A DNA stretch of 64,000 nt from Neoechinorhynchus agilis. Its lineage: Eukaryota > Animalia > Acanthocephala. The translations under genes were made by a program, and so were the position numbers. Positions 6,249 to 64,000 of this stretch are shown piece after piece. Position 1 is the stretch's first letter, and every line of letters starts with the position of its first letter. A model generated the notes under the pieces. The model was not told the DNA's origin. It saw nothing but the letters and a program-made list of their open reading frames with translations, and made no database searches. The stretch lies in assembly GCA_051530055.1 (NCBI GenBank), contig CM121342.1, positions 12,353,480 to 12,417,479 on the forward strand. Direction: 5' to 3'.

Positions 6249-9200
6249 ATGATCAGCTTCAAAGTTCGGGATATACCAAATATTGCAACTGGAACCAATG
6301 TTCTTGCCAAACTTTATTTTGCGTTTGTTACTATTCCATAAATAGAGTTTAATTTGAAACGTTTCTTAGGTATATCGCACCAATATTTTTTCGCATACAT
6401 AGACCTCTTCATGAAACGGACATTTCTGGATTACCTGAGAAAAGAAAAGTATCTAAAACTGGCAGAGAAATTGAAAGGTATTGAAAAAATTTATACGTAA
6501 ATAATTTTTTTACACAGGAGATGGAAAAATCAATTATCTTCAAAAAGGCGCAGTCTTACACGAATATTTATATACGTATTTCTCAAACAAATCATACTTG
6601 CGACATTCCTCAGCGTATTAGAGGTACGCATATCCTACCGCGTTTCAAACTGTATCACTCATAAATTCATAATTTCTGATTACATGCTGTTGGCGCATTT
6701 CAACGTTTTTTATAAGCCGTTGCACGGGTAGTACCGAATCACAGATGGCCACTATGCTTGAGTCAAGAAAATCGATTTCTTTTAGAACTTCAGTCCCACG
6801 CCTTTTATCGTTATCAAAATTAGAATTAACTTATATATTGAAAGGTCCAGTATGGATGTACCAGTTCTTCTAAATTGGGAAATTTGTTCTAACGATTTAT
6901 TTGTTTTGTCTCCTCAAATAGGCCATATTTCTTCTCGCAATGATCCCATTATTCGGTCGAATATTGCAATATATAAAGGGAGAACTCACAGACAATCGTG
7001 CAGCCGTCTTCTTGGTATCTCACATTTCATTATATCACGCAAGTTCACTCACGAGTTGCTGGTCGCTGCACGAATCACTATGTCTTGGCTTCGAAGCAAG
7101 AGCGGCTTTTATGAGATTGGTCTATGCAAAGGTCAGTAATTTTGAAAATGATAAAATTGCGCAATTCCTTTTCTTCACATTCTAGTGCTTAAGGCTTTCT
7201 CTTCATCAATGCAATCGAATCGAATCGGGATATCTTAGCAGTCTCATAAGCACCGATAGCTACTCGTTTGATACGTTCGCACAATTCGGTGTTCGAGTTC
7301 TTGGAGGCATCGTGAGATTTATTGTGGTATTTACATTTTGCTACGTTTACATTGACACGTTTGCTGCGATCGCAATATGCGTATATTTCATTGCCTATGC
7401 ACTTATACCTATCTATCTGATTTGCTTACGACTAATTAGGTTAGCGAATGAACGTTTTGAACCGGGTTTAAATTCTTTGCAGGAAACACATAAACCGGAA
7501 AGTAGATGAGAGACTTCGCAATCTCGCGATATATTGCCGATTCGCTCAAACCTTCAAAATGTGTTGTTTAGATACAGTTATCTATAAAGTGATGCGCCGA
7601 TTACATAAAAAGGAGACGTTCTTATGTGCGTTGAAAAATCTCGTGGAAGCGAACTCTTGTACGCTGCCAGCGTTATTTCACTCATTTATCACACTGACGT
7701 ATATTGTTACAAGTTTTAAAGCTCACGGCAAGCTTCCAAGCGGAGTAAATGTGTTTCAATTGATGGCTGTATCTCCCGTTTTGCGACTTAATTTTGGGAG
7801 CGATGCAATTCGATTCTTTACTCGTTTCTCCGAAGTGAAACTCGCCATTGAGAGATTGCAGGTACGGTTTGTTTATTCATATCAAAAAAGATTTACATTT
7901 TTATTCAGAAACTGGCCGAAGATGTTGATCTTAATTGCAATCATATAATTCGTCAACCGGAAAGCGTTAATAATGATTCTCACTATGCCATAGAATTATC
8001 GTCTTTAACTTCATCGTGGGACAATGAGGTATTTAGCTTTGCATTCTTTATTCCTTTAAACATTCAATTTATTCTATGTAGGCTTCTTTCATCAATCTAA
8101 GAAATATTTCTTTAACCATTGAAAAAGGAACTTTGACTTACATTGTCGGTCCGTCCAAATCAGGGAAAACATCACTGCTCTGCTCAATACTGAACGAATG
8201 TCGAATTGTAAGCGGTATTGTAAACATCCGCGGAAGCGTATCAATTAGCACCCAAACTCCATGGCTGTTTCCCGGCACAATTCGACAGAATATAATTTTC
8301 ACCGCGAGACCGAATGTTGAGCGGTACAAGGCGGTTATCTATGCCTGTTGCTTAATTGAGGTTTATTATTTTATTACAAACACTATAACGAATCGCCTTC
8401 CTGTTCAGGATTTAAATGCTCTACCCGAAAAAGATCTCACTATGATCGGTGATGGAGGAAGCGGTTTAAGCGGTGGACAAAAAGCAAGAATTTCATTGGC
8501 CAGAGCGATTTACCAAGACGCAGACGTGTATCTTCTTGATGATTCTTTGACTGCAGTCGATTATAAAACGCGGGCGCATATTTTAAAGCAGTCAGTATTT
8601 TCTTTTAATAATTTCAAAAAGAGTTCAATCGAACTTAATGTAGTTGCATTCGAATATTCCTAAAAAACAAAACCGTTCTATACTGTGCCTCCAGGGTTCT
8701 GGACGCCGGTCGTGCCGCTACGGTCGTAACTCTGAAGGACGTTAGTGAGCCTATGATTTCTTTAGAGCAGCCAAATCGATATCTTAGGGTTTAATCGACT
8801 GTATTTACGAACAAGCTGCTTCAAACTCCGATGAGGATTCTGATTCACCGCGCACTCAGCAAGATTACGATTTCGAATTAATCACTCTGGACAAAGTGGC
8901 TCGGCGATACTCGATGTGTTCACAGCATGACAAATTCGAAACAAACGGATTTGCCCTCAAGCCAAAAACAATGGACACTCTGGGCTGGCTTAAACTTCTG
9001 CGAAAATTATTTACACCGAACAAAATTGGAACCGCAATTGTTCCCTTTTTGATTCTATTTTGGTGCGGATCACATACTTTTCGCATACTGTCGGAATACT
9101 GGCTTTCTCGCTGGCTCTCAGCTGAAAACGGAAATAGCACAAAGCAGTTTAGTGACAACACGTATAAGACTTTCTACCTAGGTTTACTAATTATGAATTG

Positions 9201-11577
9201 ATTTGGTCTTTACTGGTATTTATAGGTTACCTCTTAGGATTTGTCATCTGTGCTGGTTCGGTTCTACTTATCATCACTAGCCTGATTGGCTACGATACAT
9301 TCCATGCTCATTCAAAAAGCTTAGCAAAAGTGATGGGATCGTACTCGTTTATATTCGAGAAAGTACTGCGAGGTTTGCTTTGAAGTATTCTGAGAGATGA
9401 GATTATATGCTTTAAAAAGGTGTTACGTTCAACCGATTGTCGTTCGATATCGGAGTTATGCAGAATTTCGTTCCCATTTCAACTTATTCGATGGGACAAG
9501 TTAAGTACAAATTTTATTGTATTTTAGGTCGCTTGCCGATACTTGAGAGAGATCATTAAAGACGAATTTATTTCGACTCATTTAATCAGTCATATCAATT
9601 TAATTAATTAAGTGTTTTTCAAGTGTGAATAAAACGCTTGAACAAAATTGCGGTTTTTTATTACTTTAAATTATGGAGGCAAACGATTAATGATATTATG
9701 TTTTTAGCGTAAAAACCTTTTCTGTAAGCAAAAATAACTGTAGGTAATATGTGAGGCGCATTAATTATTCTTTTATCAGGATAATAACGATAATCAACCA
9801 TACTGAGCTCCTCTTGCCTTTTCCTCCCTTTAATTTCAAACTGTCTTCGAAATTTGCTAAACGACAAAGTATCTTTTTAGGAAGCTTCATTAATCTCCGC
9901 ATTTATGATCTACATTTGCTGCATCTGTCCGGTAGCGATCGCGTTCGCAGTGCCGGCGATTTTATCTATGGCTTTCTTGGTATATCACCAAATAAATCTA
10001 ACGGCCGCAGGATATCAAATGGAATCGGACAGTAAGACTCATGCTAGAAATAGAAAGCTCATTCTCGGTACATTCATGTTGTAGCTCGAACAAACATACT
10101 AACCCATTTGGTGGCAACTCACCAGGGTCTCGTATCCGTTCGAGCATCCAAAGCTGAAGATGAAATGATATCGGAGTTCGAGTATACAATTGGTATAAGC
10201 GTTATTCGATGCATGAGAATATTTTTCGATACAATCGCTTTAGATACCAACAATCAGCTGCGGTACACGCTAATTTTGCTTGATCGAATAGCTCAAATTG
10301 CTGTTGATTTGGTTGTTCTCTTAGTCATGCTGGTGACTACAAGTGTTTTCTTGTTTTTCTATAACGGTCAGCTAATTTCAATTAATTAAAAAATCAAGTA
10401 ATGAGAAATCGTAAAAGGGAAAACCGAGGTCGGACAGCTGGCAGTGACATATACAATAGTGGTAGCTGAAATCGCTCGTTCTTTTATTCAAGAGGCTCAA
10501 CTAAGTATTAATTACGTTCGTAAAAGCATCGCTTGTCGAAGAAATAATCATCTACATTATTGATAGTTGCTATCAGCCGCTAGAGTTTTCGATCTTTATG
10601 ATGCTGTACAAGAACCGAACACCGGATCAGAGGATGAAAGCGAAATACCTCCCTATGTTGATAACTCAATCGAATTAATCAACGTCCGTTTCAAGTATTT
10701 TACAGATCTTCCCATGGTTCTGAATGGCCTAGATCTACGGATTGAGCCCAGATCTAAGGTTATTATGCGCTTAAGTACTTTCTATAGATTTTCAACACTG
10801 CAAACAAATAGGTTGCTATTGTTGGACCAACTGGAGCAGGAAAGAGCACAATATTCGGTGCCATACTTAGATTGGGGATTGTGGAAGGAAAGATTATTGT
10901 TGGCGGTATTGACACTGAATCAATGAATCTCCATCAACTAAGACGCAGCATTTCACTACTTCCACAGGTATGACTGATTTTTCACAATACAAAACCACTG
11001 AGCTATTTTTAGGAAGCGGTATTGATGAAGACTAGTATTCGGCTTAACTTGGACCCCTTTCAAGAAAAGTCGGACACTGAGATTTGGGATGTCCTTCAGA
11101 AAGTACTTGCGATTCCTTGTTAGTTTAAATCAAAGTATAAACTTATAGGTTGGACTGGATAATCGAATTCGGCAATTGAGATTTAGCGATTCAACTAACC
11201 AACTCGATTACGTATGCGAAAGCGAATCGGAATTTGGAATAAGTGAGAGGCAGTTATTGTGGTTGGCGAAGATACTTCTAGAAAAGAAATCAATTGTTCT
11301 GATTGACGAGTCCAGTTCCAAAGTCGACCAGGAAACACAGATTCAGATTCAAGAGATTATAAATACCGAGCTAAAGGAAAGTACGGTTATCAGTATAATG
11401 CACAAACTCGAAGATGCAATCAATAGCAATGTAGTTATGCTTGTGAAAGACGGAGATTTGGTCGAAAGTGGAACGCCATCAGAGTTGTTGGCGAACGAAA
11501 ACTCCATCTTCTGTCGGATGGCGAGCACTGGTGGCAAATATGCTGAGGCTACAAGGATGGATCATGTCGACTACTAA
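6249..11577 (+). CDS. ABCC/MRP-family ABC transporter (multi-exon, all introns traced are GT-AG)
   Basis: Spliced reading MISFKVRDIP...YIAPIF. NBD1 has Walker A GPSKSGKTS, signature LSGGQKARISLARA and Walker B YLLDD. TMD2 has EYWLSRW and FNRLSFDIG. NBD2 has GPTGAGKS and LIDESSSKVD. Confidence 0.92.
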
Positions 11578-32360: not shown

Positions 32361-32406
32361 TAAATGGGCTTTTAAACTCTGCTGAGCATTCGGTTTACTT
32401 TGAGAT

Positions 32407-34676: not shown

Positions 34677-34766
34677 TAATTATAAGCAAATATGGCAGGC
34701 TAAAGCGTGTGTCTTAAATTCGTATTCAAGACACACGCTTTAGCCTGCCATATTTGCTTATAATTA
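34677..34766. repeat. Perfect 39-bp-arm hairpin with 12-nt loop
   Basis: taattataagcaaatatggcaggctaaagcgtgtgtctt and its exact reverse complement. Confidence 0.95.
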
Positions 34767-35387: not shown

Positions 35388-35455
35388 GCTTTAGTACTGC
35401 GGTGAATGCTGCCACCTTTCAACGGAAATCGGGGTTCGATTCCCCTACACCGGGG
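35388..35455 (+). pseudogene. tRNA-like remnant (pseudo-tRNA or SINE head)
   Basis: T-arm GGGG-TTCGATT-CCCC (B box); no convincing acceptor or anticodon stems. Confidence 0.35.
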
Positions 35456-36764: not shown

Positions 36765-37963
36765 ATGATCGTTAATTTCATTGCATTCTTATCACTCGGA
36801 AATACTTACGGTTACAGGTGGTACTACGACCGAGCCAATTATACTCTCTTCCGTTCAAACAAAAGTGTAGATCTTACTAAGCCCAGATTTCAAGCTGTCA
36901 ATTGTGACGAAGTTGAATTTGGTCGTAATCGAACTCTTGTAAGACTTATCAAATTTAGTGAATCGAACAAAACGTACCAGGGTTGCACTAAGAAAACTGG
37001 AAAGTGCAAGGAACATGCACATTTCGACGAAGAACTTAAACTAAGGATAAATACACCTCCTTGCTGTCGGCACAATCTTATTTTAACTTATTACGACGTG
37101 CTGGATGTTCTTGAAAATTTTAACTTTTCTTACAGTCTTTACGGTGGCAGTGTATTAGGTGCGTATCGAGACAACGGGCACATTACGATTGGTGATTTCT
37201 TCATATTTTTATAACGTATGGGAATTGCCCTTAATTTAATCTCTTTTTTATAACTTTGTAATAATTTTCTTTTATAGGATCGGGTTCCGATGACAATTGC
37301 TGATTTTCTAGCAATTTGCATTACTTTTTATAGCAATCGTTAAACTAAAACCTGTATTTATCTTAAAAGCGTCTCCTGTCTTAAATGAAAGATTTTCGCT
37401 TTTTTCACATTTATTCGTATTTTCGGTCTAGCGAAAAAATATTACAGTGAACGCTGACATTTTGTTCATTCGTGCATTGTCATTGTATTAGCATTTTAAT
37501 ATTCCCACTTTAATTGATCGTTTGCCTTTATTATCTCAAAGCCAATGAAGAAATCATTTGTATTCCATACGACGACGATATAGATTTTATTGTGAACTCA
37601 ACTGAATACGATCGGTTCATGGCAGAAGCCAAACCAATTCTTGAGCAAGAAAAGAGTCGAAAACTTCAAGATGTAAGAGCAAGAAAGCAAACTCATATTC
37701 AAGTCAGCGATAAGAATAAACTGTCAGTTGATATCTTTTGGTTCATCGACAATGGCACTTCAATTGATATTCAGTTCAATTTGCTTAAGTTCGACAAGAA
37801 GATGCTTTTTCCGACCAAACCGATTGTTTTTGAGAACAGGTCGCCACAAGGCCCATCAAAGGTGAAGGAACTTATGGGAAGACTTTATAAAAACTGGCAG
37901 TATCCTTTGGATTGCAGTATTAGAAAAGGTCATAATTGCATTGGGAAACCCATGGCCTTTTGA
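36765..37963 (+). CDS. LicD/fukutin-family phosphotransferase, interrupted once
   Basis: Hydrophobic N-terminus, LYGGSVLGAYRDNGH(I)|IPYDDDIDF, VDIFWF and F..PTKPIVFE. Confidence 0.85.
37185..37564 (+). other. Candidate non-canonical intron in LicD gene (377 or 380 nt)
   Basis: Flanked by ATT/ATT or TA/TA repeats; 12-bp inverted ends TGATTTCTTCAT/ATGAAGAAATCA. Confidence 0.65.
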
Positions 37964-39452
37964 TTATCAAATATTATGATTAAGCCGCTCTCTTTAATAC
38001 GATGAACGTCATGTGGCTTGTTCGCGGGTTTTTACAATTATTAAAACTTTTGCGAATTTTTCCTGAAACATGAATACTACAAAAACGTGCACTAATCGCA
38101 CGTTTTGAAAAAGATCGATGTCAATATTGCCCTTTAAAAATTCGGTTTCTAATTTGATATTTTTAAGATAATTAAACTGTGAAAATGTATGTTTCCCGGT
38201 TACTTCCTAATATTTAGAAGCATTTAATTACAAATAGATGTATTAATCTGAAAAGGTCATTCAAAAACAATTTTTATCTCTGATTTTTCATTCACGAACT
38301 CCATTGATGCTGAGAGTATAAAACTGCAAAACACTTCGGAATTTTTCGGTTCGTCTAAGACTTTCAGGTTAATTTTTCAGCAAGTTGCAATATTTTCTTC
38401 TTCCTGTAAGAATTGTTTTTATCGAGGAACCTAACCAATTTTAAGTTATTAGAAGTTTTTGTGTGCTCTGTAAAAATTCGCATGGGGGCTGAAGCCAATT
38501 ATTTCTTTTCTACTAATATTCCTATATTCGTCCCTGCGAAAAATCTTGTTGTGAACAGAAGAACTAAACCACTTTTAATTAAGTGATCTAAAAACGAGCC
38601 AATGAGACTTTTTGAACGAACTTTTTTGAGAAAATCTTGTTCAATTCGTGAACTTCTCTTTATTATGATAAAGTGAAATTGCGAAGATCTTCGCTCGAAA
38701 TTCTTTGTGAAAATATTGAAATATTCGAATTTTTTATTGACAAGTAATAGACTGAGAGTACTAACGACAATATAAACATAAACTATTAATTGCTTTAAAA
38801 ACTTGTTTTTAATGGAATTTTATGTACATGTTTATGGTGATATCTATTTTCATCTTAATTTTTGGAAATCTATTTGTTGGGAAGTGTCGCTGTAAGCACA
38901 AATTGGATCTGATGGTTTTAATATTGGTAGTAAATATATCACGCAGAATTGAAAAAATCGCAACTTTGAAATTATTAGTACAACGACAACAACTTGGGAG
39001 CGTTTAATTGTCTAGGAAACCACATAGCGGCTTAAATACCAAATAATTTGAATACCTAATAATTTTGTAGGGTTAGATAATTTATGGGTCAGAAATTATC
39101 ATCTTCAGTACTTGCTACGTTTCCATGTTTTATTTGGATCAAATTTCTTTAACGCAGAATATAAAAAAATAACTCACAAAGGCAACATGGGTCTGATAGA
39201 TGTAATTAAATTGGAACTGCAAAACAAACCTATGATATATAATTGGTTTAGATCCTTCAATTATTTTGACCGATCATCAAAAAATAGTTTTACTTGTCCG
39301 CTAATCCTTGAAGAACAATTACGGCAGAAGCGTCTTAAATGCTAAAAACCCAACATTAAAACGGGAATTTGCCGGTGTAAGAGTAAATCGTTTAAGTTTA
39401 TGACCTTGGATAAGCACTTAAAAGTGTCTGCAATATCTTCACGTGCATAAAT

Positions 39453-40067
39453 TTATTTAGACAAAGAATTGTGTGTGTTCACGGCATTATCGAAGTCGAT
39501 TGAGAATCGTGTTCGCCCTTCATATTTTTTATACTCAACTCCAGCAAGACCAAAAATGATCCTGGCACCTTGACCAACAACCTTTGTCATGTATTTTTCC
39601 GAGTAATATACAACTTTCCTAATTCCAGCCTGAACAATTAGTTTAGCACATTCATTACAAGGAAACATCGTGACATATATGGAAGTTGGAGCCACATTGG
39701 AGCTGATGGATAATGCGTTTCGGTTCATAATTGCATTCATCTCGGCATGACACGCATAAGCGTACTTTGTTTGAAGATAATCTTCCATTTTGACACTTTC
39801 AAGTCCTTCTCCTCCATTCCATGGAAGCTTGTCATCCGAACATCCTACTGGGAATCCGTTATAGCCTATTCCAACAATATGGTTCGATGCCTCGTCCACT
39901 ATACATGCCCCCACTTGAGTCCTTGGATCTTTACTTCTTTGAGAACTCAGGAAAGCAATGCACATGAAATACTCTTGCCATGACAAATAATCTTTACGCC
40001 CAAGATTATCGGGAATCACTTCTGGAAGAGGTGGCATCAAATCTGTCTCTTTTGAACTGTTTTCCAT
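39453..40067 (-). CDS. DCTD: dCMP deaminase (intronless)
   Basis: [55 protein letters not shown]. Confidence 0.95.
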
Positions 40068-40383
40068 TGAGACCTTTGTCCCAGATACCAAAGAATTATC
40101 TTAAATCATTTGGGGAAAAGTGTTAAAACCTGGCGACTGGTTAGAATGCAAGTCTACTATAAGTTTCTTTAGTCTTATAGAACATATTTCCTATATTATT
40201 TTTACATAATATAAATTGGTTACAGTTGTATTTAAAGGAGCTACACATTTACGAATCAGTCATTAGACTGAAATGAGATTTACAAGCGGCTGAAAAACGA
40301 AAGCTATCCGCAATGAACACCCATTCGCTTCATTGGTATCAAAGGGACATTTATCTGAAGTAGAAGGGTGATTCGAATTTCAA

Positions 40384-42106
40384 TCACTCATTTGACTGTG
40401 TCCTTGCGGACTTTGGTACCCAATCAAGATAATCGCTTTTTGCACAAGCCCTATACTCTTCAGCAAGTGTTGCTACGACTTCTTTGGCATCATCGAATTC
40501 GCTTAAGTTATCAGCAAACATGGGTTCGCTTTTAAACCGTTCAAGAAAGGCTTCTCGTTTGATTAATTTCTCGTATTGTTTTATACATTTCTCAAACAAG
40601 CCAACAACACCCGTGTGATTGGCAAGCATAAGTCCATTAACTCGATGAGTGTGTTTTATATAAGGACTTCTTTGTGAAAGTGCCACCTGAATGGAAGCCG
40701 GTCCCCATGGAATAAATTGAGCCAGGCGACGTTCCTTGATTCGAATAAGACTCTGGTGAACTTGTGGGATTTCAACCTGACCTTGAATGATATTAAGGAT
40801 CGATATGTAGCAATGGGGAAAGTCCCTTTCTCTGGACATAGTGACCATGAAGTTTTTTGGTTGAAGAAGGCGTCGCATCACGTCCAGGACTGTAGTTCGT
40901 CGAACTTCACTTTCGTGCTGATCGCTAATGAGAGGAGTGTAACTTGAGATTAGGAAATGAGGATTTGGATTCGGAATCAGCGACGATACGAGTGTCGTCA
41001 AATCATTGTACATGTATCCAGGATATCGCAAGGTCGATGTACTCGCTGACATTATCGTGGAAATTAATTTATTAATCTCAGCGAGGTCAGGGTTATCGAT
41101 ATGCAGACGCTCCGCTGCGATGTGGTTCAATGAATTGTTATCTAACACAATTACACAATCAGCGTTTTGAGTCAGTCGCTTTAGGGTCAGAAGTGCATTG
41201 TAGGGCTGTACTATTATATCAGAAACGTCCTCTTGTACGGACGCAGTTCCAAGTTCAAGAAGGGGTCAAAAAGGCCGAAAATTCAAGATGAACAAAACAC
41301 AGTGAACAGAACATTGATTAAAAGAAAGTTTTAATCGATCATTGATTCTTCAGACCTGAAGGAGAACAAACAAAGGTACATAACTATATATCCTTCATCT
41401 TAGAACCAGCAAGTTAAAATGGTAACTTCTGTATGCGTCTTAGGACGAAATAAACGAGTTTCATAAAATTGCCTAAATATAAGCCAAATACTGGGAACCG
41501 GGTCTCTTGAAGAGGAAAAACAGAATATGTTTGCAAAAGCTTTTTTGGGTATCGATCACTTAGACGCTCAAGTATAAACGACCCCATCCCCGATCCTGTT
41601 CCACCTGCAATGCTATGGCACATGACGAATCCCTCTAGTTGGTCGCTATTTTCCGATTCGCGATCAATAATATCAAAATACTCTTCACTTAGCCGCAATC
41701 CCTTTTCGTACCCACTTGCCCATGAGTTTCCTGCACCACCACCATCTCGCGAAACGTAAACATTCTCGCGGTTATACAGATTTCTGTGGGTGCCTGCCAT
41801 TATGCCACTAATCACACGAGGTTCGAGATCCATAAGAATGGCTCGTGGAATGTAGTGCAAGTCATCAGCCTGATAGAAGAAAACATCTTTACGGTCATGA
41901 ACGGGCTCTGAGACTTGAGACGAATCAATTTCTTTGCCGTTGGCACAAACTGACGCGGAATTGTAGTCTGTGGGTCTAGTAGCTGCGAATGGTTCAAGAG
42001 TGCCTTCAGCATTGATACCATGTTCAACGCAAATCTGTTTCCAAAACTCACTGCCTACTTGGTTTCCACATTGACCCAGTTGGAGGGTAATAAGTTCTCG
42101 CGGCAT
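40384..42106 (-). CDS. TUBG1: Gamma-tubulin, interrupted once (41230-41503)
   Basis: [42 protein letters not shown]|[30 protein letters not shown]. Confidence 0.96.
41230..41503 (-). other. Intron of TUBG1, candidate non-canonical (274 nt)
   Basis: CAAGAG direct repeats and imperfect 14-bp inverted ends; a 262-nt GT-AG alternative would add TRFP. Confidence 0.5.
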
Positions 42107-42714
42107 CTGAAATAGTGTATGGCAGGGTAAGAGAGAAAATCATGATGAAAATATACCAGTAAATGAGTTCGCCTCATATAAAATTCTTATCAAAATATGG
42201 AAAAACGATCAATTGCTAGCGTTTGTCAGTCACCTTATCTGTGTTTTCCTGGATGTGAGAGCAATCCAATTTGAGCTCAAAACGTTCTCAGACATTGGAG
42301 GCGCTCTGGTGCTTTCCATCATAAACCAGCAGGAAGGATCTACTCTTTAATCCCAGATCCGATTGCTTGACCGTGGAAATTCACACAGTGTTCTTAAAAG
42401 ACTTGCCCAGCAACCGTAGCGGCGACGGGTCTTCGAAGTCCTGGCCGTAAGAGTTCTGTTATGTAGCCCAAGTGCCACTACGGGGAAGCGGTGATGTACA
42501 ACCAAAATATACGGATGTTACTAGAATATTAAACAGCGACGGACCAATACAGCTAATCTTTATTGTTACCGCAATTAAATCTAAAATTCACCATACTATC
42601 GAATTTATTGTTAAAATGCCGAGTAAGGGAACAAGACACTATAGCACTTGCTCGAACACTCAATTTTTACATGGATAAATATGACATCCATTAGAGTTAA
42701 TCGGAGTTGTATGT

Positions 42715-45068
42715 TCACAACTGTTCGCGTCTAAGTGGTGGTTTGGGTAGCCTTGAGTGTGTAGCGTTTGATCGTTTCATCAAACTACGACCAGGGAATC
42801 TAAGATGACAGGAAAGGTTAGATGAAGGCAGTATGGGTCGTTGAACACATTTTGCAATCACTGGACCATTACTGCTGATTCCGTTTGGTCGAGAGTCAGC
42901 CTTTGGTGTGCTCCTCACTCCATTCGAAACTTGAGCAGTAGGAGGAGGAGGTCGTGAAAGGTTTCGCCTTGGATGTACGTAATTCCTGGCACTGAGAGTA
43001 TTATCGGACGACGAATGAATGACTGCGGATATCATATTTGCGGCGGTGATGGCCGCGTTTTTAGAGGATGATTTAAATTTGTTCTGAGGTGTTTCTTGCT
43101 TCAACGAGGACTTGATTGCTCCTTGCATATCTTTTCGTTGACTTAGATCACAGGACTTGTCTCTCCGCATTTGAGCGGGTCGTTCCGGACTAATAGCGAG
43201 GGTTTCCGTCTTTCGCTGGCGTCCGCTTACGTATGCCTTGAGTCTTGATCTTGAAGATATTCCAACGTTTTTCTTTAGATATTGATTGTTCTCATCTTGT
43301 CGACTTGGTAATGTTTGCGTTTGTGACCCCAAATAAGGTTGTACGGTTCGCTTATTGGGTCTTGATTGTATGTCTTGTGGTGGATCGGGTGAAACTCTAA
43401 GTGTTTCAGTTCCTTTTCTATTAGATCCGTATCGTATGGGTTGTCGTCTTGCTTCAGGTGGTGTCGATGAGAATGCAGAATGGTATGATCCACTTGAACC
43501 GGGAGACGATAAGTCTGCTGTGGACTGTGGTTGAAGAAGGTCACCATCGCCTGACTGATCTTCTGATCGTGATCCGCCTGATGGGTTAAGAAGAACTGAT
43601 CGTTGAAGATTTTCCATCTGGGCCAGAGCTACGTCCTGAACATCTTTGTAATCGTGGAATCGACGATCACGTGAGCTATCACGGACGCTTCCAGTCGATT
43701 GAGGAGTGAATGATCCATTGAAGTTATACGAAGACAGGGCAATTTCTTCGTTTTATAAGTTTTATGTCAAAAACAACAACTTTTAAAAAGACGGTCATCG
43801 CCAACTTTGTACCCCGAAAATTCCTGCACTATCTGAAGGAAAAGATCAACGGTCATCCTTCAGGCCCTTAAGAAAAGAAGCAAGCGATCGCTTTCAGAAA
43901 GGATTAAGTGTGCAAGTGGCGTAAATAATCCACCAAGAAACGTCGTGAGCTATTTCAAATCATTACTCAATGAACGCTAAAGTTCCCTTTGTGTTTTACT
44001 TTTCAATTTTTTTAAATATTTCAAAGTTTACAATTTTAATACTTGAAAATACACAGACGAACCCCGATGTGACATTACAAATAACCTCAATAGAGGTTTA
44101 AAATCAATGTTCAAAATAGAAAAACGGACAATGTTATTGGGTGTTTTTCGAGAATAATATACTCAAAGCAGAAATTTTTAGAAACCCATTGGTCACCTTT
44201 TTCAGCAGCAATTTTAGTCGTTTGATACAAATTTCGTTTGAAGATCGATATCATTGATTTAATAGCAAACTTCGAGGTTTTGCTTATACGCTAAAGTTTT
44301 TCGAGTTTTGAAATGAACAACAAAAAACTAAATAATAATGACCGAAAATACGATTCCATCGAAGAAATTCCTGTTGTAAGGCCTTGTTTGTTGTTGCTGA
44401 TCCGATTCGGAATTGTATGTTTCTTCTCTGGTCACAAAGCTATCATTGGGTCCTGGACGTATATATTTATAAAAAAACACATATTAGTACAAATTCGCAT
44501 TTTCAAAAAATCTAGAGAAGCGTTCAAAATTTAAAGCAAGACAGAATTTGTGGACGACATCGATACTCCATGCACTAAGTTTGGACGACAAAACGTTCCA
44601 ATACCTATCATATCATCGTCTCGATACGGATAAACCGAGAAAAAATAATCATCGTCATCATAGGGGCATTTAATGTCAAATTCATCCCATTCAAGGCTTT
44701 GATGCGAGGACGTGGATAACTTACGTCCTTTTTGTTCTAACACAATTAAAAATAGTTGGTTTGATTTTCCGCTTACCTAATACGCGATTTTCTTTGACTG
44801 GACTAGATTTTTTCGGCACTATAAAAAAACACGAATGCCATTTGAATTTAAGAGTAACAAAAGTAATACCGTTTTTGCGTTTTTTTAGAGCGATTGATCT
44901 GACTTTATTGATTAAGGCGAAATGAGCGACGTTGAGGTCAGTTATTCGCTGTTGGGTTTCCTCTTCCTTAACTGGAGACCAACGATCTCTCCAATGCAAC
45001 CACTGATCTGAGCTGCGATCAACGACTGCGGCCAGATTTGCCAATTCCGTATTGTCATTCTCAATCAT
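42715..45068 (-). CDS. Hypothetical low-complexity Ser/Pro/Arg-rich protein, multi-exon
   Basis: ORFs 44721-45068, 44531-44743 and 42715-43750 can be joined by GT-AG introns; no family recognised. Confidence 0.55.
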
Positions 45069-45466
45069 CTTAAATCTCTCACACAGGAGGAACAGAAAGT
45101 TTGTCTCTATGGCTGAGTTGTCTGGCAGGACGCAGAATGTATCAGTCAGGAAACGTCAGTTTTTCGAGACTGTGCCGTTCCTCGGCAGTACCAAAGCGTT
45201 ACGCCGCGCGCGACGCAAAAACACCGATTTCGCTTCTTAGGAAAATTCAGCACGCCACTAGAAACCAGGAGAACTTTTAGATAGAAGTCGGGAATTTTGT
45301 CACGAGACTAAGAGCTTTCGGATCCGGTATCGCTTGTAGCCGGAAGAAACATATAGAGAATAAAGTGGCGTCGTGGGAACTTGGCCTCCGTCGATTTAGT
45401 CTTTAAATTGGGGTTTTCCATAAATGATGAAAGCTAAACATGTTCGACGTTCCAAAAACCGCGAGA

Positions 45467-46590
45467 AAAGCATGTCTTATAAATTTCAGATCCTTGTATT
45501 TGTTTATTATCCTTTGATATCCCGTCTGGTTTCCATCTTCATTTAAAAAAACATAGTTTATGATGGATCTAAAATCTCTCTGCCTTGGTCATTTGCTTTC
45601 TTGATCTCTATAACTCGTATTCTTGGAATTTCACTTAATTCGTAATCTTAGCCGATCACAAGAATCTCTCGATTTTTTACAGTCAATTGCTTTTTGACTG
45701 ATTACAAAAACGATATTTATTTTGAAAGCATGTCTTATAAATTTCAGATCCTTGTATTTGTTCATTATCATTTGATATCCCGTCCGGTTTCCACCTTCAG
45801 TTAATAAAAAGCTTAGTTTATGATGGATCTAAAATCTCTCTGCCTTGTTCATTTGCTCTCTTGATCTCTATAACTTGCATTCTTGCTATTTCGGTTAATT
45901 CGTAATCTTAGCTTATCATAAGAATCTCTCGATTTTTTACAGTCAATTGCTTTTTGACTGATTACAAAAACGATATTTATTTTAAAAGCATGTCTTATAA
46001 ATTTCAGATCCTTGTATTTGTTCATTATCATTTGATATCCCGTCCGGTTTCCATCTTCATTTAAAAAATGCTTAGTTTATGATGGGTCTAAAATCTCTCT
46101 GCCTTGGTCATTTCCCTTCTTGATCTCTATAACTCGTATTCTTTATATTTCAACTAATTCGTAATCATAGCTGATCATAAGAATCTCTCGATTTTTCACA
46201 GTCAATTGCCTTTTGACTGATTTTAAAAACGATATTTATTTTAAAAGCATGTCTTATAAATTTCAGATCCTTGTATTTGTTTATTATCCTTTGATATCCC
46301 GTCTGGTTTCCATCTTCATTTAAAAAAACATAGCTTATGATGGATATAAAATCTCTCTGCGTTGGTCATTTCCTTTCTTGATCTCTATAACTCGCATTGT
46401 TGCTATTTCAATTAATTCGTAATCTTAGGGGATCATAAGAATTTCTCGGTTTTTCACTGTCAATTGCTTTTGGACTGATTTCAAATACGATATTTATTTT
46501 AAAAGCATGTCTTATAAATTTTAGATCCTTGTATTTGTTCATTATCCTTTGATATCCCGTCCGGTTTTTATCTTCATTTAAAAGAAAGCT
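45467..46590. repeat. Tandem array of ~259-bp units (~4.3 copies)
   Basis: aaagcatgtcttataaattt recurs at 45467, 45725, 45985, 46244 and 46502. Confidence 0.95.
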
Positions 46591-46799
46591 TGAAGATGAA
46601 ATTCAACCATTTCATGGTATTGGCTAAGGTGTTAGTTTTTCGTCTGTTTATGTTTCATACGAATCGACTTTATTACTGGTATCCGGATCTCTTGGTTTTG
46701 TCAATAAGGATTCCATCAATGAACTGGAGCGTAAAAGAAGGTACGAAGCCTAAGCCGAATTTGTTATTGTGGAAGGTGAGAATGTGTTGCTACGGGCCT

Positions 46800-47400
46800 T
46801 ATTCAAGACTCTAAGTATGCCGGAATTTGCGTAACGTAACATTTCGATCTTGTAACCTTACAGCGATGATCTTTAAGTAGAGTTTGGACTCTAAATACCT
46901 TTTACTGAAAAGAAATTTATCCATACTTTTTATCATGTAGAGAAAATCCTTCGAAATGATAATGTTAGAATTGTGGTGATTATACTCCCGGTTAAAAGGC
47001 ATTTTATTGCTAAGAAATATTTGGATAGAGATGCCCGCTCCTTGCGTTGTGTGGCGTTTAATTGTTGCTAAACACGTCGCTGATCGGTAGTTTTAAGCTA
47101 AAATTAGCTTAGTCCTCAAGAACAATTTGTCGTTTGAGGTTTTGCTTTCCACGAAATGCGTTCTATCAAAATCTATGTGATATTGCTTTGTATCCTGGTG
47201 GTTGGATATGGCAGATGAGTGTTCAAATCGGCGATAGGTTTTTTTATGTTGAACGATACTCCTCTTAATGCCCTGTATCTTTTGTTCGATTCCCGAGAGA
47301 CTGATTATTGTGCCTCTTCTTCTTAAAAGTGTTTGCGAGAATGATCCCTTTATTGTTCTACAACCGAACCCCAACATTTTCGCTACAATTCTAACTTGAT
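46800..47400 (-). mobile_element. Penelope-like GIY-YIG C-terminal remnant
   Basis: RSIVQHKK...SAISNHQ...YHIDF and RYLESKLYLK. Confidence 0.6.
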
Positions 47401-47561
47401 CATCCTTTACTTTGGTTAAAAATACTCATTTTCAACTACATCGTATTTAGTGGCGTTTTATTCTCTGTCGCATATAACGAATTAAATTGAACTTTTTGTC
47501 CACAAACGTACACGCCACAAACTTTTTATCGCGCTTCTAGTGTACACGAACTGCACAAACA

Positions 47562-48323
47562 ATGATTCAAAATAATAGAATCAAATTCTTAGCTGGTATT
47601 GTATTCGTCCTGATGACAGCGTCCACACTATTGCTTTGGTTCGGCATTCTGCGGGATCCAGCACCACGAATGGACAAAAATATGAATATTGTATGCCCTA
47701 CTATTACCGGAGAATTTTCAAATCTATCTTTGGTAGATTTCTTCACTAGTCCAGAAGGTATGAGATTAATGTAGAAAAGCTATTTGACATCTCCTTTAGT
47801 TGGCTATACAAGGATAATCACTCTATCGACTGCTGCAACTTATACAATTATTCTTTTGATGTCATTGGTGATCACTGTCACCAAACAAAAATCGCACTTC
47901 GTTTCATTTGAAATCATTGCAGCTCTATCGATTTTTACAGGTAGGTTGTGTACGAAGTGGATGTACTGACAACCTAAATTCCTTCGAATTTCGATTTCAT
48001 CTTTAGCGATCGTCCAAATGGTAGTGGTATCGCTGGAATCTATCTGTGTCGTTCGATCGAAACGACGTGTTACCGAGACGTTAATCCTAACCAGCACTAG
48101 CATACTTTTCTCAGTGTTCAGTGTGATCGTAGCACAATTGTGTGCCAGTAAGTGTTTAGGCAACAACTCAAAATACGAAGAGAATAGCAAAGCGCTCACC
48201 AGACCTGATAAGTATAAAAGGATTTACTTGAATAATGCATCAAAACGTCGATTTAGCATGCTCCGGGTGAATGCGACGATAGTGGAACAACCATCGATTG
48301 ATGATGATCGAGGTCTAGCTTAA
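47562..48323 (+). CDS. Small multi-pass membrane protein, 3 exons, GT-AG introns
   Basis: About four hydrophobic segments; introns gtatga...tttag and gtaggt...tttag join the ORFs in frame. Confidence 0.65.
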
Positions 48324-48529
48324 ATAAAAAGAATTTTTTTTAACGTTTCAACTGAAATTTTATGTAAGGTTATCAAAATTTACATGCTTCAATTGCTGTT
48401 ATTATTCCTTCAATGAAATTGGGATTCGCGCTTGGATATTTCAAGCTAAGAACGAATTAAATGCCTTAAACCTGAACACTAAATTCTAATTATATTCACT
48501 TGCTCAACACTGAAAATCTTGTGTTCATT

Positions 48530-49961
48530 TCAATCATCAAAAAATTGCTGAAAACACGGTCCAATGCGTCTCACTATATCATCAGTAATAACAGCCCGTC
48601 CATGATCCATAAAAGCAGTAATAGCACATTCTCTAACAAGAGAGCCAGCCGCATACGCAGCTACCATCATAGGGTTTACTTTAGGTTCAATAACCTCGAG
48701 TGATTTGGCCGTCCATCCTGCGAAAGTGCCCATAACTCCGCTTAAAACGTCGCCTTGGCCAGCGCACCTCCTATAACTACCTTTTCGCTCTACTGAAACA
48801 CACTTAACTCCATCGCAAATAAGATCAAAATCCTGTTTTCGAAAAATTGTAAGACCGCCGAGATTTATGCAAAGTTCACACATTTGATCACGGTCGCCAC
48901 TCGCGTCCCTTAATGACTCAACACTCATAACTGCCTTTACCATTCGGTCATATTCCATTGCATTAGGCGTTTTCGAAGACGACGAGGAGAACGCGTACAA
49001 GTTTGAAACACGAATAAATTGTAAAGAAATTATTCATTATAATTTCAGTTTCAATTAGCGATTTTTGATTCAGAAATAGATTTATCTTGAAAATTTTCGG
49101 CCTTTTCGTTGGCCTTCTTCAGTCAATTGTTTCGCATTTCTGAACCAAACATCGCTAATTGAAACTGAAACACGAATAAATGCCTCTTTGTACAGAACCC
49201 TTTGAAAATCAGTTAAGAATAGTAGTTCGGCCGGTGAATAAGCAAAATACGACGTGTAAAAACAATTAGATATTCTTAGATTTAACCTGAAAAAGTATGT
49301 TGTTATAGGAAATGAATTAGATAAATGAAATTAATTTAGACGATTCACGATTCTAGGACGAAAATTAATGTTTAGTCCAATGTTCGTGGGGCGCATTCTT
49401 CGTTGACGTTCACAATGTCGTGACTTTGCTCGGGAAAGGTCTTGAGACCCCCACAATACCAGAAATCGGAATTCTCCTTTTCGTTCGAGTAAGTATTGTG
49501 TTTCTCTTTGAATGTACGATTTGTGGAAATCGATCGATTAACAACAGACCATCCGCATCAATAACAACAGTTGTTTTCGGCATTCGTTCATAAATGTTAG
49601 TCAATATTTTAGCTACGAATTCAAGTTGTTGGTCATCTCGACCAAGTCCAGGTCCTAAGACGACTGAAGTACTTTTATTGATCCATTGCAAAAGTCTTTC
49701 AAGATCGGCGTTTTGGGCGTTTAAGAGTGGATGAACAACGAGGTCAGGGGAATAGGATTTAATAATTGGCGCGGTTGAGTTAGGACACACAACTCGGACA
49801 TAATCAGCTCCTGATTTTAGTGAGCTTATTGCAGAAAAGTATGGTGCTCCGGCGTAGTCTTCGGATCCGCCTATAATAGCCACTCTGCCACATTGCCCTT
49901 TATAAAGTTTACTGGTAAGGCGAGGAATACACTTTTGCATTAAGTTAAGAAGTTCCGACAT
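48530..49961 (-). CDS. NAXD: ATP-dependent NAD(P)HX dehydratase, interrupted once
   Basis: KGQCGRVAIIGGSEDYAGAPYFSA, VLGPGLGRD, VIDADGL, NTILT|PNAMEY, RRCAGQGDVLSG. Confidence 0.93.
49020..49181. mobile_element. Family A hammerhead mini-element nested in the NAXD interruption, 16-bp TSD
   Basis: tgaaacacgaataaat at 49004-49019 and 49166-49181; ~35-bp inverted arms; homologous to 13674-13932. Confidence 0.8.
49087..49126 (-). ncRNA. Minimal type I hammerhead ribozyme motif
   Basis: TTGA-CTGAAGA-AGGCC-AACGAAAA-GGCC-GAA-AATT-T-TCAA: stem I 4 bp, stem II 4 bp, palindromic stem III. Confidence 0.65.
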
Positions 49962-50751
49962 CTAAAAGACATTCAAGATTGCTCAATAGTAAGCAAACAA
50001 TTGGGTGCATACAATCTTTCGCTTTTTGAGTAAGCTTTCGTTCATCGCCAAAATCCATTGTTGCAGTGAAGTCTGCCAAGCGATGAAAGTAGAACTCTCT
50101 AAATTCACGTCAATATTAAGCTGTTGTCGCAACACTTTCCACATAAGAACATACCGCAAGGAGATGTGAAGACAACATTATTTTATGTTCACCAAGATTC
50201 TACGTTTGTTGGGGTTTGAAGCAGCAGAATTGCCTAAAATAAAATCGCCAAATTGGAGCCTCTTTAAAGTGATCCAAAACGCCACACACGGAAAATAGAA
50301 TAAGTGTTAAATTCCAATTGAGCATTGAGTAACGGACTCAAGTGGACGCGTATTCAATGCATAATACAGCTTATTTTTGCGTCGATAAAAAAAGAGGGTC
50401 GCATCGCAGTCTTCTGCCAAAAATCTTTAAGCGTTAATTCAGCATTGATGGTTTCTTCGCACTGTGTACTGAACAAAATAGCCTTTGATTCTCAACGGTA
50501 GCAGGCAAAATATTTGGCTGTATAATTAAAACGGCGATACTAGATACGATAAATGCATTTTAATTATTTTCCAATGTTTGTTTGTGAGAAAAGAGGCTCA
50601 GCTTTACAGATTTGAACGAGGTGTTTCATTGCACGACGAAAAAGTAAGTGGATAACATAAATACCGTTAACTTAAATTATTTGGTTCGACCTGTTACATT
50701 TTCGACGCAGTTTGAGAATAGTTTTGCTCTATAAACTCAACAGAACTAGAA

Positions 50752-51115
50752 GTGTTATTTAGGTATTCACCCGGCAAATAATTTTTTATTAAAAACGTTC
50801 TTAACCGGGTGAAGATCTAACTAACACTCCAGAGGATGGGCGAAACGTCTTTGCTAAAAAATTCTTTACCGGGTGAAGACCTAAATAACACGACTGACGA
50901 AGTTAAAAACGTCTTAAAAAGTTCTTAACCGGGTGAAAATCTAACTAATACTCCAGAGAATGTTCGAAACATCTTTGCTAAAAAAATCTTTACCGGGTGA
51001 AGACCTAAATAACACCCCTGACGAGGACGTTTTTAACAGGATGAAGATCTAACTAACACTCCCGACGATGTTCGAAATGTCTTCATTAAAAAATCCTTTA
51101 CCGGTGAATACTTCT
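50752..51115. repeat. Inverted head plus tandem ~60-65 bp units in alternating A/B order
   Basis: ccgggtgaagatctaactaac and ccgggtgaagacctaaataac alternate; the first segment is inverted relative to the array. Confidence 0.85.
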
Positions 51116-51206
51116 AAATAATAATTTTAATCATATATCCCGGTACCTATTCACATATCGGCATTTCAACAGAACTGTCTTACCCATGTTTTAAAATCCG
51201 TTTTAG

Positions 51207-51949
51207 ATGGGTCATATTAATGTCCTCTATGGAGTGAGTGGCAGTGTTGCCGCTATCAAAATCCCAGAAATACTCAGTCTCATCAGAAGAGAAAACTATT
51301 CAATTATCCTGGTTTTTACTAAATCATCGATGCACTTCCTTAATCCGGGCGACTGTTGCAAAAAGGGGGACGTTTATCGATTGCAGAATGAACGGGGATA
51401 TCCACACGGAGAATGTGTATATTTTGAAGATGTTGATGAGTGGGCATCGTGGTCTAAAAGAGGTGATCCAGTCCTTCATATACTTCTGAGACAATGGGCG
51501 ACGATTTTTGTTATAGCCCCTTTAAGTGCAAACACAATGGCTAGCGCAATGATCCTTTAGGAAATCAAATGTCTATATTACGCAGATTTGGACGCTTACG
51601 GTGGGTAGAAATCCCCAGCGAGGCTTAAAAGGATCTTTGCTTTAAAATCTGCAACGGCATTTGTGACAATCTCCTATGTTCGGTAATGCGTGCATGGCCA
51701 GTTGACCACTACAACCAAGTACTTATAGCGCCGGCAATGAACACGGAGATGTATCGCAATCCATTAACCGATCTGCAAATTACCTTTCTGAAGGACCAAC
51801 TTGGTGTACGTGTATTAAAACCGGTGGTCAAAACCCTAATGTGTGGCGAGCACGGTATCGGAGCGATGGTATCACCTGAATCAATCGTTAAGGCAATTGA
51901 TTTTCAATTATGTGAGCTCGGCGAGCGAGATAATAGCAACTCAGGGTAA
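51207..51949 (+). CDS. PPCDC: Phosphopantothenoylcysteine decarboxylase, interrupted once
   Basis: VLYGVSGSVAAIK, DEWASW...DPVLHILLRQWA, APLSANTMA|KICNGICDNLL, APAMNTEM, LMCGEHGIGAM. Confidence 0.93.
51544..51644 (+). other. Candidate non-canonical intron in PPCDC (101 nt)
   Basis: TA repeats at both ends; inverted ends GCAATGATCCTTT/AAAGGATCTTTGC; in-frame TAG. Confidence 0.75.
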
Positions 51950-52575
51950 CGTAAACTATCTGCTAAAATGTTCGCCGGGGGAAGGGTAGATCAAAAGTTT
52001 TTTAAAAAAAATGAGACTATTCTGCTTGAAGACTGGACTACTCATGCTTGTTTATAACGGTGAAAAATCATAGATGTTATACTAAATCCGATATCAAGGT
52101 TGCTTGTAATTTGCAACCTTGATAAAGCCGTATATCGTCGGATTTAATAAAACGCCTTTGATTTTTCAACTTCATAAATGAGACTACTCTTTAATGTTTG
52201 TATCTGGCATAAAAACTCCAATATTTCGGCGCACAATCTTGCGCGCCTTTATCAAAATTGCTTGTAAGTTTTTTCAACTAAGCACAAGATTGTGCGTCGA
52301 AATATTGGAATCAATAAATTCTTGTAATTTTGACGCCAGATACAAACATGAACAATTCAATCTTCAAACACTACTCTCAAATATGGAAATCTAGTGAGCT
52401 CCGTGATTTCAATAATGCCCAAAGGTGGCTCTCTACAGCCGCGGAAAGGATTGCTTCTGTTTCCTTTGGATCTTTACAAACCTTTAGTTCAAAAATTGAT
52501 GATGCTAAACTCAGAAAGAGTGAGCTCTATTATTGTTGATGCTTATTGATTCTAAAAACATTGAAAATGGTTTAA

Positions 52576-53268
52576 CTACCCGTACATGAGGTCACCATGC
52601 TCTTTGACTGCAGCCTCCAGGATCTTTTCTACCTCGGTTTGTACCCTGTCAACAGATTGTGCCTTTTGAGCGGTTTTGGTTGTCGCTGTTGCCGGATTCA
52701 AGATTGATTCTACCAATCGGTCAATTTCTTCATCGTCCTCATACTCATCAACATCATTAAAAGCGATCTCCATTGCGTCCTCCATCATTTCGTCTGCAAC
52801 ACCCATTTTTAGCATTGTTTTCTCGAACTCTCTCATAGTGGCAGCAAGCTCCGGAACTCGGCTAAGGGCATGAACGCTCTTCATGACCCCAGTTGCCTTG
52901 GAAACACTTGCCGTAAGCTTGGCATTGGCGAGATGTTCACGCAATTTTAGCATAAGACTGTTGATTTCCGCTTTTGTCCGATAGAGCCTTGCTTTTTGCT
53001 TAATCGAATGAACTGTTCCCGAAACCCTACAACAGTCCGTTCATTTTCTGGCTTTTGCGACTTCGAGGGCGAGTACACGAACAGCCGGATCATTGCGTCC
53101 TTGTTTAGCAGTTGACCTAATTGAATCAAGAACCTTGAACTCTTCGCGTTCAATCACTCTAATGTCCTTTTCTAGTTTCCGGATCTCCTGGCGAAGATTT
53201 TTACATAGATTGTCATATTTCTCCTTCAAGCGCTCTGTTGGAGGTTTTCGTTGTAATGCCTTGAACAT
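52576..53268 (-). CDS. CHMP3: ESCRT-III subunit CHMP3/Vps24-like, interrupted once
   Basis: RKPPTE, IEREEFKV...AKQG, LALEVAKARK|QKARLYRTKAEINS, VPELAATMREF...KMGVADEMMED. Confidence 0.8.
52999..53043 (-). other. Candidate non-canonical 45-nt hairpin intron in CHMP3
   Basis: Starts at an in-frame TGA; folds AATGAAC..CTGTT/AACAG-TTCATT; no GT at the required position. Confidence 0.65.

Positions 53269-61445: not shown

Positions 61446-64000
<2,555 letters not shown>

Follow-up and report, generated by a model that had tools for sequence, protein, structure and literature searches.

The question raised by the locus described here is how five conserved genes can give rise to intact proteins when the coding sequence of each is interrupted by a segment that does not have the GT-AG ends of an ordinary intron. 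The locus lies in a stretch of 64,000 nt (hereafter the window) from the genome of Neoechinorhynchus agilis, an acanthocephalan that parasitises fish. It belongs to CM121342.1, a 16.4-Mb chromosome of assembly GCA_051530055.1, on which a position equals the window coordinate + 12,353,479. The genes encode a LicD/FKRP-like protein, gamma-tubulin, NAXD, PPCDC and CHMP3. A preliminary description of the window had placed one insert of 45-520 nt in each of them, and all five were found at the places reported; apart from this single lesion, the reading frame of each gene contains no stop or frameshift. The inserts are real and statistically unusual, and only their exact removal restores conserved proteins. 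Judged from the sequence, splicing of the pre-mRNA probably removes them at non-canonical boundaries, assisted by a terminal helix.

Exact removal of the inserts restores the conserved motifs that had been pointed out earlier, and the resulting junction alignments are without gaps in all five genes. The collinear (exact-removal) model has the highest profile score in every gene, and the GT/GC-AG alternatives are 4-27 bits lower. The view that the inserts are not knock-outs and need precise removal is therefore upheld, on the basis of the gap-free junctions, the best profile scores, the purifying selection on the LicD exons and the old age of the NAXD insert. The cut register within each direct repeat is ambiguous, and the junction positions given below represent one register. 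None of the exact-removal registers of any insert is GT/GC-AG or AT-AC, as had been stated, yet in-frame GT-AG pairs lie near the junctions of LicD, tubulin and CHMP3. Two regularities read from the registers were not retained: a phase-0 register is automatic with a repeat of at least 2 nt, which provides three registers, and the initial A common to the inserts is a pattern noticed post hoc with n = 5. The possibility that the inserts are canonical U2-type introns was rejected, because no collinear register is GT/GC-AG and the canonical in-frame alternatives all score lower.

The inserts have a common architecture. The minimum-energy or centroid folds contain an end-to-end helix that closes every insert, with arms of 10-18 nt in 5/5 cases and a duplex energy of the paired ends of -14 to -21 kcal/mol. 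The end-pairing energy of each insert is among the best 1-7% of 1000-2000 random window intervals of the same length, and the Fisher combination of the five p values gives a joint p of ~2e-4. Six canonical introns of the window, in contrast, show random-like end pairing (p 0.6-0.86), and the paired inverted-repeat ends reported earlier are thus stronger than in both the random and the canonical controls. Between the 5' end of an insert and its first arm there are 0-8 nt, and at the 3' end up to 16 nt lie beyond the second arm; the distance from helix to junction varies between the inserts. The flanking direct repeats of 2-6 nt were also found in 5/5 inserts, with totals of 3-4 nt (LicD), 6 nt (tubulin) and 2 nt (NAXD, PPCDC and CHMP3). 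In random intervals the chance of a repeat is 0.18 for at least 2 nt, 0.06 for at least 3 nt and 0.002 for at least 6 nt; the combined value by Fisher's method is p ~0.002, driven mainly by the CAAGAG repeat of tubulin.

The LicD/FKRP-like gene, on the forward strand, provides through its paralogues the strongest evidence that an insert is removed. Exon 1 (36765..37184, from the open reading frame and the spliced model) ends in GGSVLGAYRDNGHI, which aligns with 'GGSLLGAARHGDI' of FKRP without a gap across the junction, and exon 2 (37565..37963) starts with PYDDDIDF. The preferred extent of the insert is 37185..37564 (380 nt). The earlier reading (37185-37558, 374 nt) had the same 5' boundary, but its 3' boundary fits better 6 nt further on, which gives RDNGHI|PYDDD. 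The boundary at 37564 is preferred because the Pfam LicD score is 52.4 bits with it, compared with 45.4 for 37185-37558 and 28.7 for the annotated GT-AG pair (37159..37541), because the ATT direct repeat (37182-37184 and 37562-37564) is kept in all five paralogues, and because the family spacing RDNGHIPYDDD is restored; the collinear model gains 23.7 bits over the annotated one. The 5' arm TGATTTCTTCAT (37193..37204) forms a perfect 12-bp pairing with the 3' arm ATGAAGAAATCA (37545..37556).

There are at least five LicD-like copies: the one in the window, a twin (99.85% identity) at a distance of 38 kb, another copy (95%) at 0.75 Mb and a pair on CM121341.1. All five copies carry the insert at the identical site, and a search of ~95 kb of the genome found it elsewhere only in these paralogues. 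Between the window and the CM121341.1 copies, dS (the synonymous divergence) of the exons is 0.27-0.48; the ratio of nonsynonymous to synonymous divergence, dN/dS, is 0.29 for exon 1 and 0.13 for exon 2, the latter with dS 0.48. In this comparison the insert is identical over its initial 24-32 nt, whereas its interior has decayed with indels. In the 3' arm of the CM121341.1 paralogue, one change is retained as a G-U pair, one pair is gained and one is lost. Purifying selection on exon 2 indicates that it is translated in frame, and hence that the insert is removed and has been for a long time. The comparison with the copy 0.75 Mb away was uninformative, as the insert is more conserved than the exons there, which is probably due to gene conversion. 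A block of ~9.6 kb (31890-41468), containing a BSD gene, LicD, a dCMP deaminase gene and gamma-tubulin exon 2, is repeated ~38 kb downstream, at ~12.4238-12.4340 Mb of CM121342.1, with 99.7-99.85% identity, and represents either a very recent duplication or an uncollapsed haplotype. In addition, a tandem array (45466-46591; 4.3 copies of a 258-nt unit, 91% match) separates the NAXD region from an unnamed 491-aa gene, and 24 nt of its unit are similar to a section of the LicD insert.

The gamma-tubulin gene is on the reverse strand. Exon 1 (41504..42106, from the open reading frame and the spliced model) ends in ...YSVFPLQE, the insert (274 nt) occupies 41230..41503, and exon 2 (40384..41229) is supported by the profile scores of spliced models. 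The direct repeat CAAGAG stands at 41509-41504 and 41235-41230, and the fold pairs ~41499-41490 with 41254-41246. The gamma-tubulin gene of a close relative, Pomphorhynchus laevis, is intronless, reads FPIQNEASDVIVQPYN and is collinear with the insert-removed N. agilis protein, which indicates that the insert is specific to the N. agilis lineage. CAAGAG is a 6-nt duplication of the original coding sequence, a signature of insertion. All animal gamma-tubulins compared (114/114) contain a 16-residue FP...PYN segment ending in [ED]xSDVVVQ. The profile of these 114 proteins scores the collinear model at 794.1 bits and the GT-AG model at 766.6 bits (+27.5); with the tubulin Pfam model the values are 187.2 and 183.5 bits (+3.7). 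The downstream duplicate of the block ends inside the gamma-tubulin insert, and its fragment, which consists of exon 2 only, is annotated as a 222-aa Tubulin_C protein.

The NAXD gene, also on the reverse strand, carries the longest insert. Exon 1 (49491..49961) ends in ...KRNTIL(T) and exon 2 (48530..48970) starts with (T)PNAMEYDRM; both were delimited by alignments, which are gap-free across ILTPN. The insert of 520 nt (48971..49490) has an AC direct repeat and arms at 49487-49472 and 48991-48974. The insert-removed protein has no gap through ILTPN in comparison with a solved NAXD structure, and the junction is also collinear with a relative of 63-64% identity. Nested in this insert is a foldback element (49004..49181) bordered by a perfect 16-nt direct repeat, TGAAACACGAATAAAT, at 49004-49019 and 49166-49181. 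Because it hosts a later transposon with a target duplication of its own, the NAXD insert appears to be an old, long-tolerated intron. The nested element is 88% identical to a copy at 13.8 kb; this full copy (13674-13920, or 13662-13932 with flanks) has 108-nt arms that are 99% complementary and a perfect 12-nt target duplication. The family core is CTGAAGAAGGCCAACGAAAAGGCCGAAAATTTTCAA, and a diverged, inverted relative of it occurs in the tubulin insert and at 13.7, 26.8 and 35.6 kb, with fragments recognised by core similarity at ~26773-26819, ~35618-35667 and 41246-41292. The last of these lies in the 3' part of the tubulin insert. The preliminary description held that the inserts share architecture and no sequence; the first part stands, whereas the second does not apply to the NAXD and tubulin inserts, which share the foldback core.

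These elements bear on the origin of the inserts. The target duplications of the foldback family are long and variable (12 and 16 nt), unlike those of miniature inverted-repeat transposable elements (MITEs) of the DDE type, and point to another mode of insertion. The five inserts themselves were considered as classical MITEs mobilised by a DDE transposase and rejected as such, since their repeat length varies between 2 and 6 nt, their arms are subterminal and their copies are few. The variable repeats and subterminal arms fit heterogeneous insertions of which the survivors are those that can be removed.

In the PPCDC gene (forward strand), the alignment places the end of exon 1 (51207..51542) at ...APLSANTMA and the start of exon 2 (51644..51949) at KICNGICDNLL, with a gap-free match to 'GKIAGGLCDNLL' of AtHAL3a. 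Across the junction ANTMAKICNGICDNLL stands against ANTLGKIAGGLCDNLL of Arabidopsis HAL3a, again without a gap. The insert (51543..51643, 101 nt) has the arms GCAATGATCCTTT (51546-51558) and AAAGGATCTTTGC (51628-51640) and a fold z-score of -2.5, and in the AG..TT register its first base pairs with its last. The Pfam scores are 98.0 bits for the collinear model, 85.4 for a GC-AG model and 88.8 for a GA..AT model (+9 to +13). U12-type AT-AC introns, for which a 5' /RTATCCTT box and a TCCTTAAC branch site near the 3' end were sought, were rejected, as the in-frame AT-AC pairs have no 5' box and delete conserved residues. The sole ATCCTTT string, in PPCDC, is a hairpin arm, and the register that uses it scores 88.8 bits compared with 98.0.

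The CHMP3 gene (reverse strand) has the smallest insert, of 45 nt (53002..53046), with hairpin arms at 53044-53031 and 53017-53008 and an AA direct repeat. According to the alignment, exon 1 (53047..53268) ends in ...LALEVAKAR(K), an in-frame TGA follows directly after its last codon, and exon 2 (52576..53001) starts with (K)QKARLYRTKAEINS; the junction is gap-free with human CHMP3. The collinear model scores 87.5 bits and the GT-AG model 77.2 bits (+10.3). CHMP3 is the weakest of the five cases, given its in-frame 63-nt alternative from GT (53061) to AG (52999). Other copies of the PPCDC and CHMP3 inserts were sought within the window, and there was none. The CHMP3 gap (53043-53001) formally looks like a bypass site: an AAA for take-off is followed at once by TGA, a hairpin lies on the 5' side, and an AAG for landing stands across a gap of 45 nt. 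Translational bypass of the type of T4 gene 60 was rejected for the set as a whole, since the remaining four inserts measure 101-520 nt and are rich in stops, and the CHMP3 likeness was judged a coincidence; split genes that make separate polypeptides were rejected because the breaks lie within invariant motifs.

Taken as a model, the observations suggest that lineage-specific insertions, at least partly of mobile-element DNA, may have entered formerly continuous coding sequence. The inserts would be recognised without GT-AG ends, a short duplicated target would overlie each junction, and the terminal helix would bring both junctions together. Removal would act on the pre-mRNA, and the remover would most likely be a spliceosome that tolerates non-consensus ends once the helix has juxtaposed them, as in Amoebophrya and Fritillaria. 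Several points weigh against this interpretation. The pairing p values of single inserts are moderate (0.01-0.07), and no common boundary motif emerges from the five cases. Ordinary GT-AG introns are present in the genome, and nothing here shows an altered spliceosome. In-frame GT-AG alternatives with passable signals occur in LicD, tubulin and CHMP3. A search for N. agilis transcript-derived proteins across the junctions, with a chimeric query of four junction peptides and a single-exon control, returned only annotation-derived proteins. Recent insertion could be part of the reason why the codons beside the tubulin, PPCDC and CHMP3 inserts are intact.

The canonical introns of N. agilis provide a basis for judging these points. 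Clear examples in the ABCC transporter gene (forward strand, span 8029..11148) are the GT-AG introns of 45-53 nt at 8029-8081, 8361-8408, 10759-10811, 10968-11012 and 11103-11148; only clear introns were used as controls, since the transmembrane parts of ABCC align too weakly for a full gene model. Genuine canonical introns are 45-56 nt long, begin with GT followed by a mostly A/T-rich sequence and end in YAG or AAG. They predominate in the two multi-intron genes examined, ABCC and a PAK-like kinase. The PAK-like kinase, 0.75 Mb away, is annotated as two genes, one with the PBD part and one with the kinase part; two introns of the canonical type, GTCGGT..TTCAG (48 nt) and GTAAGC..AAAAG, interrupt its kinase domain, and the stretch between the two gene calls could hide another unusual intron. 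At 8595-8643 of ABCC, a well-formed 49-nt GTATTT..TGTAG intron puts the downstream exon (FLKNKTV...) one base out of frame; the explanation is either an indel error of the assembly beside a run of A or an intron with the non-canonical ends GT..AA (8595-8638).

It could be argued that the spliceosome uses cryptic canonical sites near the junctions. In that case the LicD, tubulin and CHMP3 proteins would depart slightly from the conserved form, and NAXD and PPCDC would be inactive, split or truncated. Many in-frame GT/GC-AG pairs do occur near the junctions by chance. LicD offers AG|GTGCGT together with a pyrimidine tract and AAAG, which its paralogues retain; tubulin has GTATTT..ACAG; CHMP3 has GTCGCA..TTAAG, 63 nt apart, a typical intron size; and GTCGGT and AAAAG serve genuine introns of N. 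agilis. The public annotation, made by BRAKER with mRNA-Seq evidence (PMC12690905), mis-models all five genes: NAXD and PPCDC come out split or truncated, and conserved residues are missing from the other three. The annotated LicD protein, P0121, reads GGSVL|ANEEIIC, which corresponds to GT 37159 .. AG 37541. Judging from product length and span, the annotated tubulin (478 aa, 1723-nt span) fits only GT 41491 .. AG 41206, with loss of DVSDIIVQ, and the annotated CHMP3 (209 aa, 693-nt span) fits only the 63-nt pair, with loss of VAKARK. NAXD is annotated as two genes of 181 and 142 aa, the first with a bogus 44-nt intron and a frame shift into the insert, and PPCDC ends at 117 aa.

We consider this explanation unlikely. 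All canonical models sacrifice conserved residues for which the genome retains in-frame codons, such as VAKARK of CHMP3, and score 4-27 bits lower, and the FP...PYN segment is kept by 114/114 animal gamma-tubulins. In the LicD paralogues, GAYRDNGHI, which the annotated model omits, evolves in a coding-like manner with two synonymous changes and one replacement, whereas ANEEIIC, which it adds, has 3 replacements in 7-8 codons. For NAXD and PPCDC there is no acceptable canonical solution, since every one breaks the invariant ILTPN or the ANT..K..G spacing; BRAKER joined neither gene despite its mRNA-Seq evidence, as expected if a canonical junction is absent there.

Another idea is that N. agilis has, beside ordinary splicing, a structure-guided and dinucleotide-independent removal pathway, either spliceosome-independent cutting and ligation of RNA or somatic excision of DNA, for which the helix and the direct repeat would be the sole signals and which would serve many genes genome-wide. 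Such a pathway seems improbable to us, and its two forms differ in how they fit the evidence. In the RNA form, which on its own is doubtful to a still higher degree, the helix would be the recognition element for a structure-specific endonuclease and an RNA ligase, as in tRNA and HAC1/XBP1 splicing, or for Euglena-like machinery. The junctions do lie in or beside a continuous helix, with the first and last bases of the PPCDC insert paired, there is no common dinucleotide, and the canonical introns of the same genome have no such helices. However, no bulge-helix-bulge geometry and no IRE1 loop consensus were seen when the folds and junction sequences were read, the helix lies at varying distances from the junctions, none of the inserts shows the Euglena signature N3CDG...CH'GN5-6|R, and the comparable introns of Fritillaria require the U2 spliceosome (PMC13326754).

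It is also very improbable that the loci are simply damaged or redundant, through recent deleterious transposon insertions, decay of a duplicated block or assembly artefacts, with the function located elsewhere or lost. Such an origin would be in line with the retroelement-rich window, the nearby duplication of 31.9-41.5 kb at 99.8% identity, the possibility of small indel errors in the assembly (such as the ABCC frameshift at 8595-8643) and the possibility of paralogues beyond the incomplete searchable protein coverage of N. agilis. However, there is one lesion per gene with no other frameshift or stop, purifying selection acts on the LicD exons both before and after the insert, and the nearby duplicate contains only exon 2 of gamma-tubulin and therefore no intact spare. 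Protein searches found no second N. agilis NAXD or gamma-tubulin in databases whose coverage of the species is incomplete, and the BUSCO duplication of the genome is only 1.8%.

The least probable explanation is somatic DNA excision resembling that of ciliate internal eliminated sequences, with the direct repeats as pointers and the assembly as the germline form. In its favour, pointer-like 2-6 nt repeats flank each insert, such excision would be precise and scarless, and whole worms with much germline tissue were sequenced. Against it, we know of no description of programmed DNA elimination in either rotifers or acanthocephalans, and the pooled whole worms, at 96% k-mer completeness, gave the insert form as their consensus. 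Splicing also accounts at least as well for the intron-like tolerance of a nested transposon and for the RNA-level precedents in the literature.

The source material is relevant to several of these arguments. The sequenced DNA came from a pool of ~50 whole worms, and whole animals contain much germline tissue. As the insert-bearing form is the consensus of this pool, the inserts are not rare alleles. The genome measures 46.2 Mb in three large scaffolds, with a k-mer completeness of 96% and a BUSCO duplication of 1.8% (PMC12690905). BUSCO completeness of the genome is 47% (Metazoa) and 58% (Eukaryota), below that of the transcriptome, 55% and 71% (PMC12690905). Some inferred gene loss could therefore, as a hypothesis, be a gene-finding artefact; the low transcriptome values suggest that most acanthocephalan gene loss is real. 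The genome paper never uses the word "intron" (PMC12690905), and one of its supplementary files contained no intron, splice or transcript-level information. RNA-seq reads of N. agilis are deposited as PRJNA1223661, and a Trinity transcriptome is available at Zenodo (10.5281/zenodo.17199078).

The remainder of the window, which has a G+C content of ~38%, contains the ABCC transporter gene, a Tudor gene, a Forkhead gene and several reverse-transcriptase fragments of the LINE (long interspersed nuclear element) type. Pieces of non-long-terminal-repeat retrotransposons (reverse transcriptase, endonuclease-like) lie at 12489-13586, 27552-28028, 30014-32273 and 62924-63997, and the window is otherwise gene-dense. 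Rfam and tRNA scans of the window gave zero matches.

Finally, we compared the inserts with the known systems in which introns lack the usual ends or arise from mobile elements. Full-text literature searches for introns of this kind in acanthocephalans or rotifers yielded no report, and two large introner surveys name neither group. The canonical introners of Micromonas, Aureococcus and dinoflagellates (Huff 2016, Gozashti 2022/2025) resemble the N. agilis inserts in that a transposon insertion makes the intron and the target duplication contributes to the junction. However, they carry or create GT-AG sites and form large, near-identical families. The nonconventional introns of euglenids share the pairing of the ends, the junctions that can slide within short direct repeats and the coexistence with conventional introns (PMC12501133, PMC11170887). 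Their genetically defined code, 5'-N3CDG-/-CH'GN5-6|R, is absent from every register of the five inserts on inspection by eye; only tubulin has a Euglena-like N3-CGG, and its 3' spacing is 8 nt instead of 5-6. Furthermore, the hosts are unrelated.

The closest architecture is that of the introner elements of Amoebophrya, in which inverted repeats of 8-20 nt join the intron ends in a hairpin that also joins the exon ends (PMC7789003), and direct repeats of 3-5 nt lie over the boundaries with no dinucleotide signature (Farhat et al. 2021, PMC7789003). In each system, inverted repeats pair the ends, direct repeats overlap the boundaries and make them ambiguous, and the terminal dinucleotides show no preference; each is found beside canonical introns, in a parasite whose genome is compact. 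Amoebophrya is, however, a dinoflagellate protist with >60% non-canonical introns, some of which belong to recognisable repeat families, and their removal has been validated by RNA-seq. N. agilis, in turn, is an animal; its inserts have repeats of 2-6 nt and, in ~95 kb of the genome, could be assigned to families only in part, and their removal is deduced from sequence comparison. The preliminary description had regarded the inserts as a candidate new system. Its call for precise removal holds, whereas the claim of a new system does not, because the architecture has been published for Amoebophrya introner elements; the novelty appears to be that introns of a known kind occur in an acanthocephalan lineage.

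The tunicate Fritillaria borealis offers the nearest case among animals. About ~95% of its introns are non-canonical, with AG/AC and AG/AT dominant, YAY triplets and a duplicated U2AF (PMC13326754, PMC11282704; Henriet et al. 2019; Soo et al. 2026). As in N. agilis, the intron positions are species-specific, the ends are not GT-AG, and terminal inverted repeats and target-site duplications suggest a transposon origin. The LicD, tubulin and NAXD inserts have one register each with a 3' AT or AC, most with YAY-like triplets, and registers similar to those of Fritillaria can be written as LicD CAT|TA..TAT|, tubulin ..TAC| and NAXD TAC|TC..; PPCDC and CHMP3 have none. In contrast to Fritillaria, no N. 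agilis insert has a full AG/AY register, and normal GT-AG introns are common. The canonical and non-canonical introns that lie side by side in 64 kb form a natural contrast for the role of the terminal helix. If a structure-guided pathway acted genome-wide, part of the reported acanthocephalan gene loss would be an annotation artefact. If the proposed splicing is correct, N. agilis would be the second parasite with a shrunken genome in which such introns occur, after Amoebophrya, and Acanthocephala the second animal lineage, after Fritillaria, with hairpin-ended introns that ignore GT-AG, which would point to a convergent tolerance of splice sites after transposon invasion.

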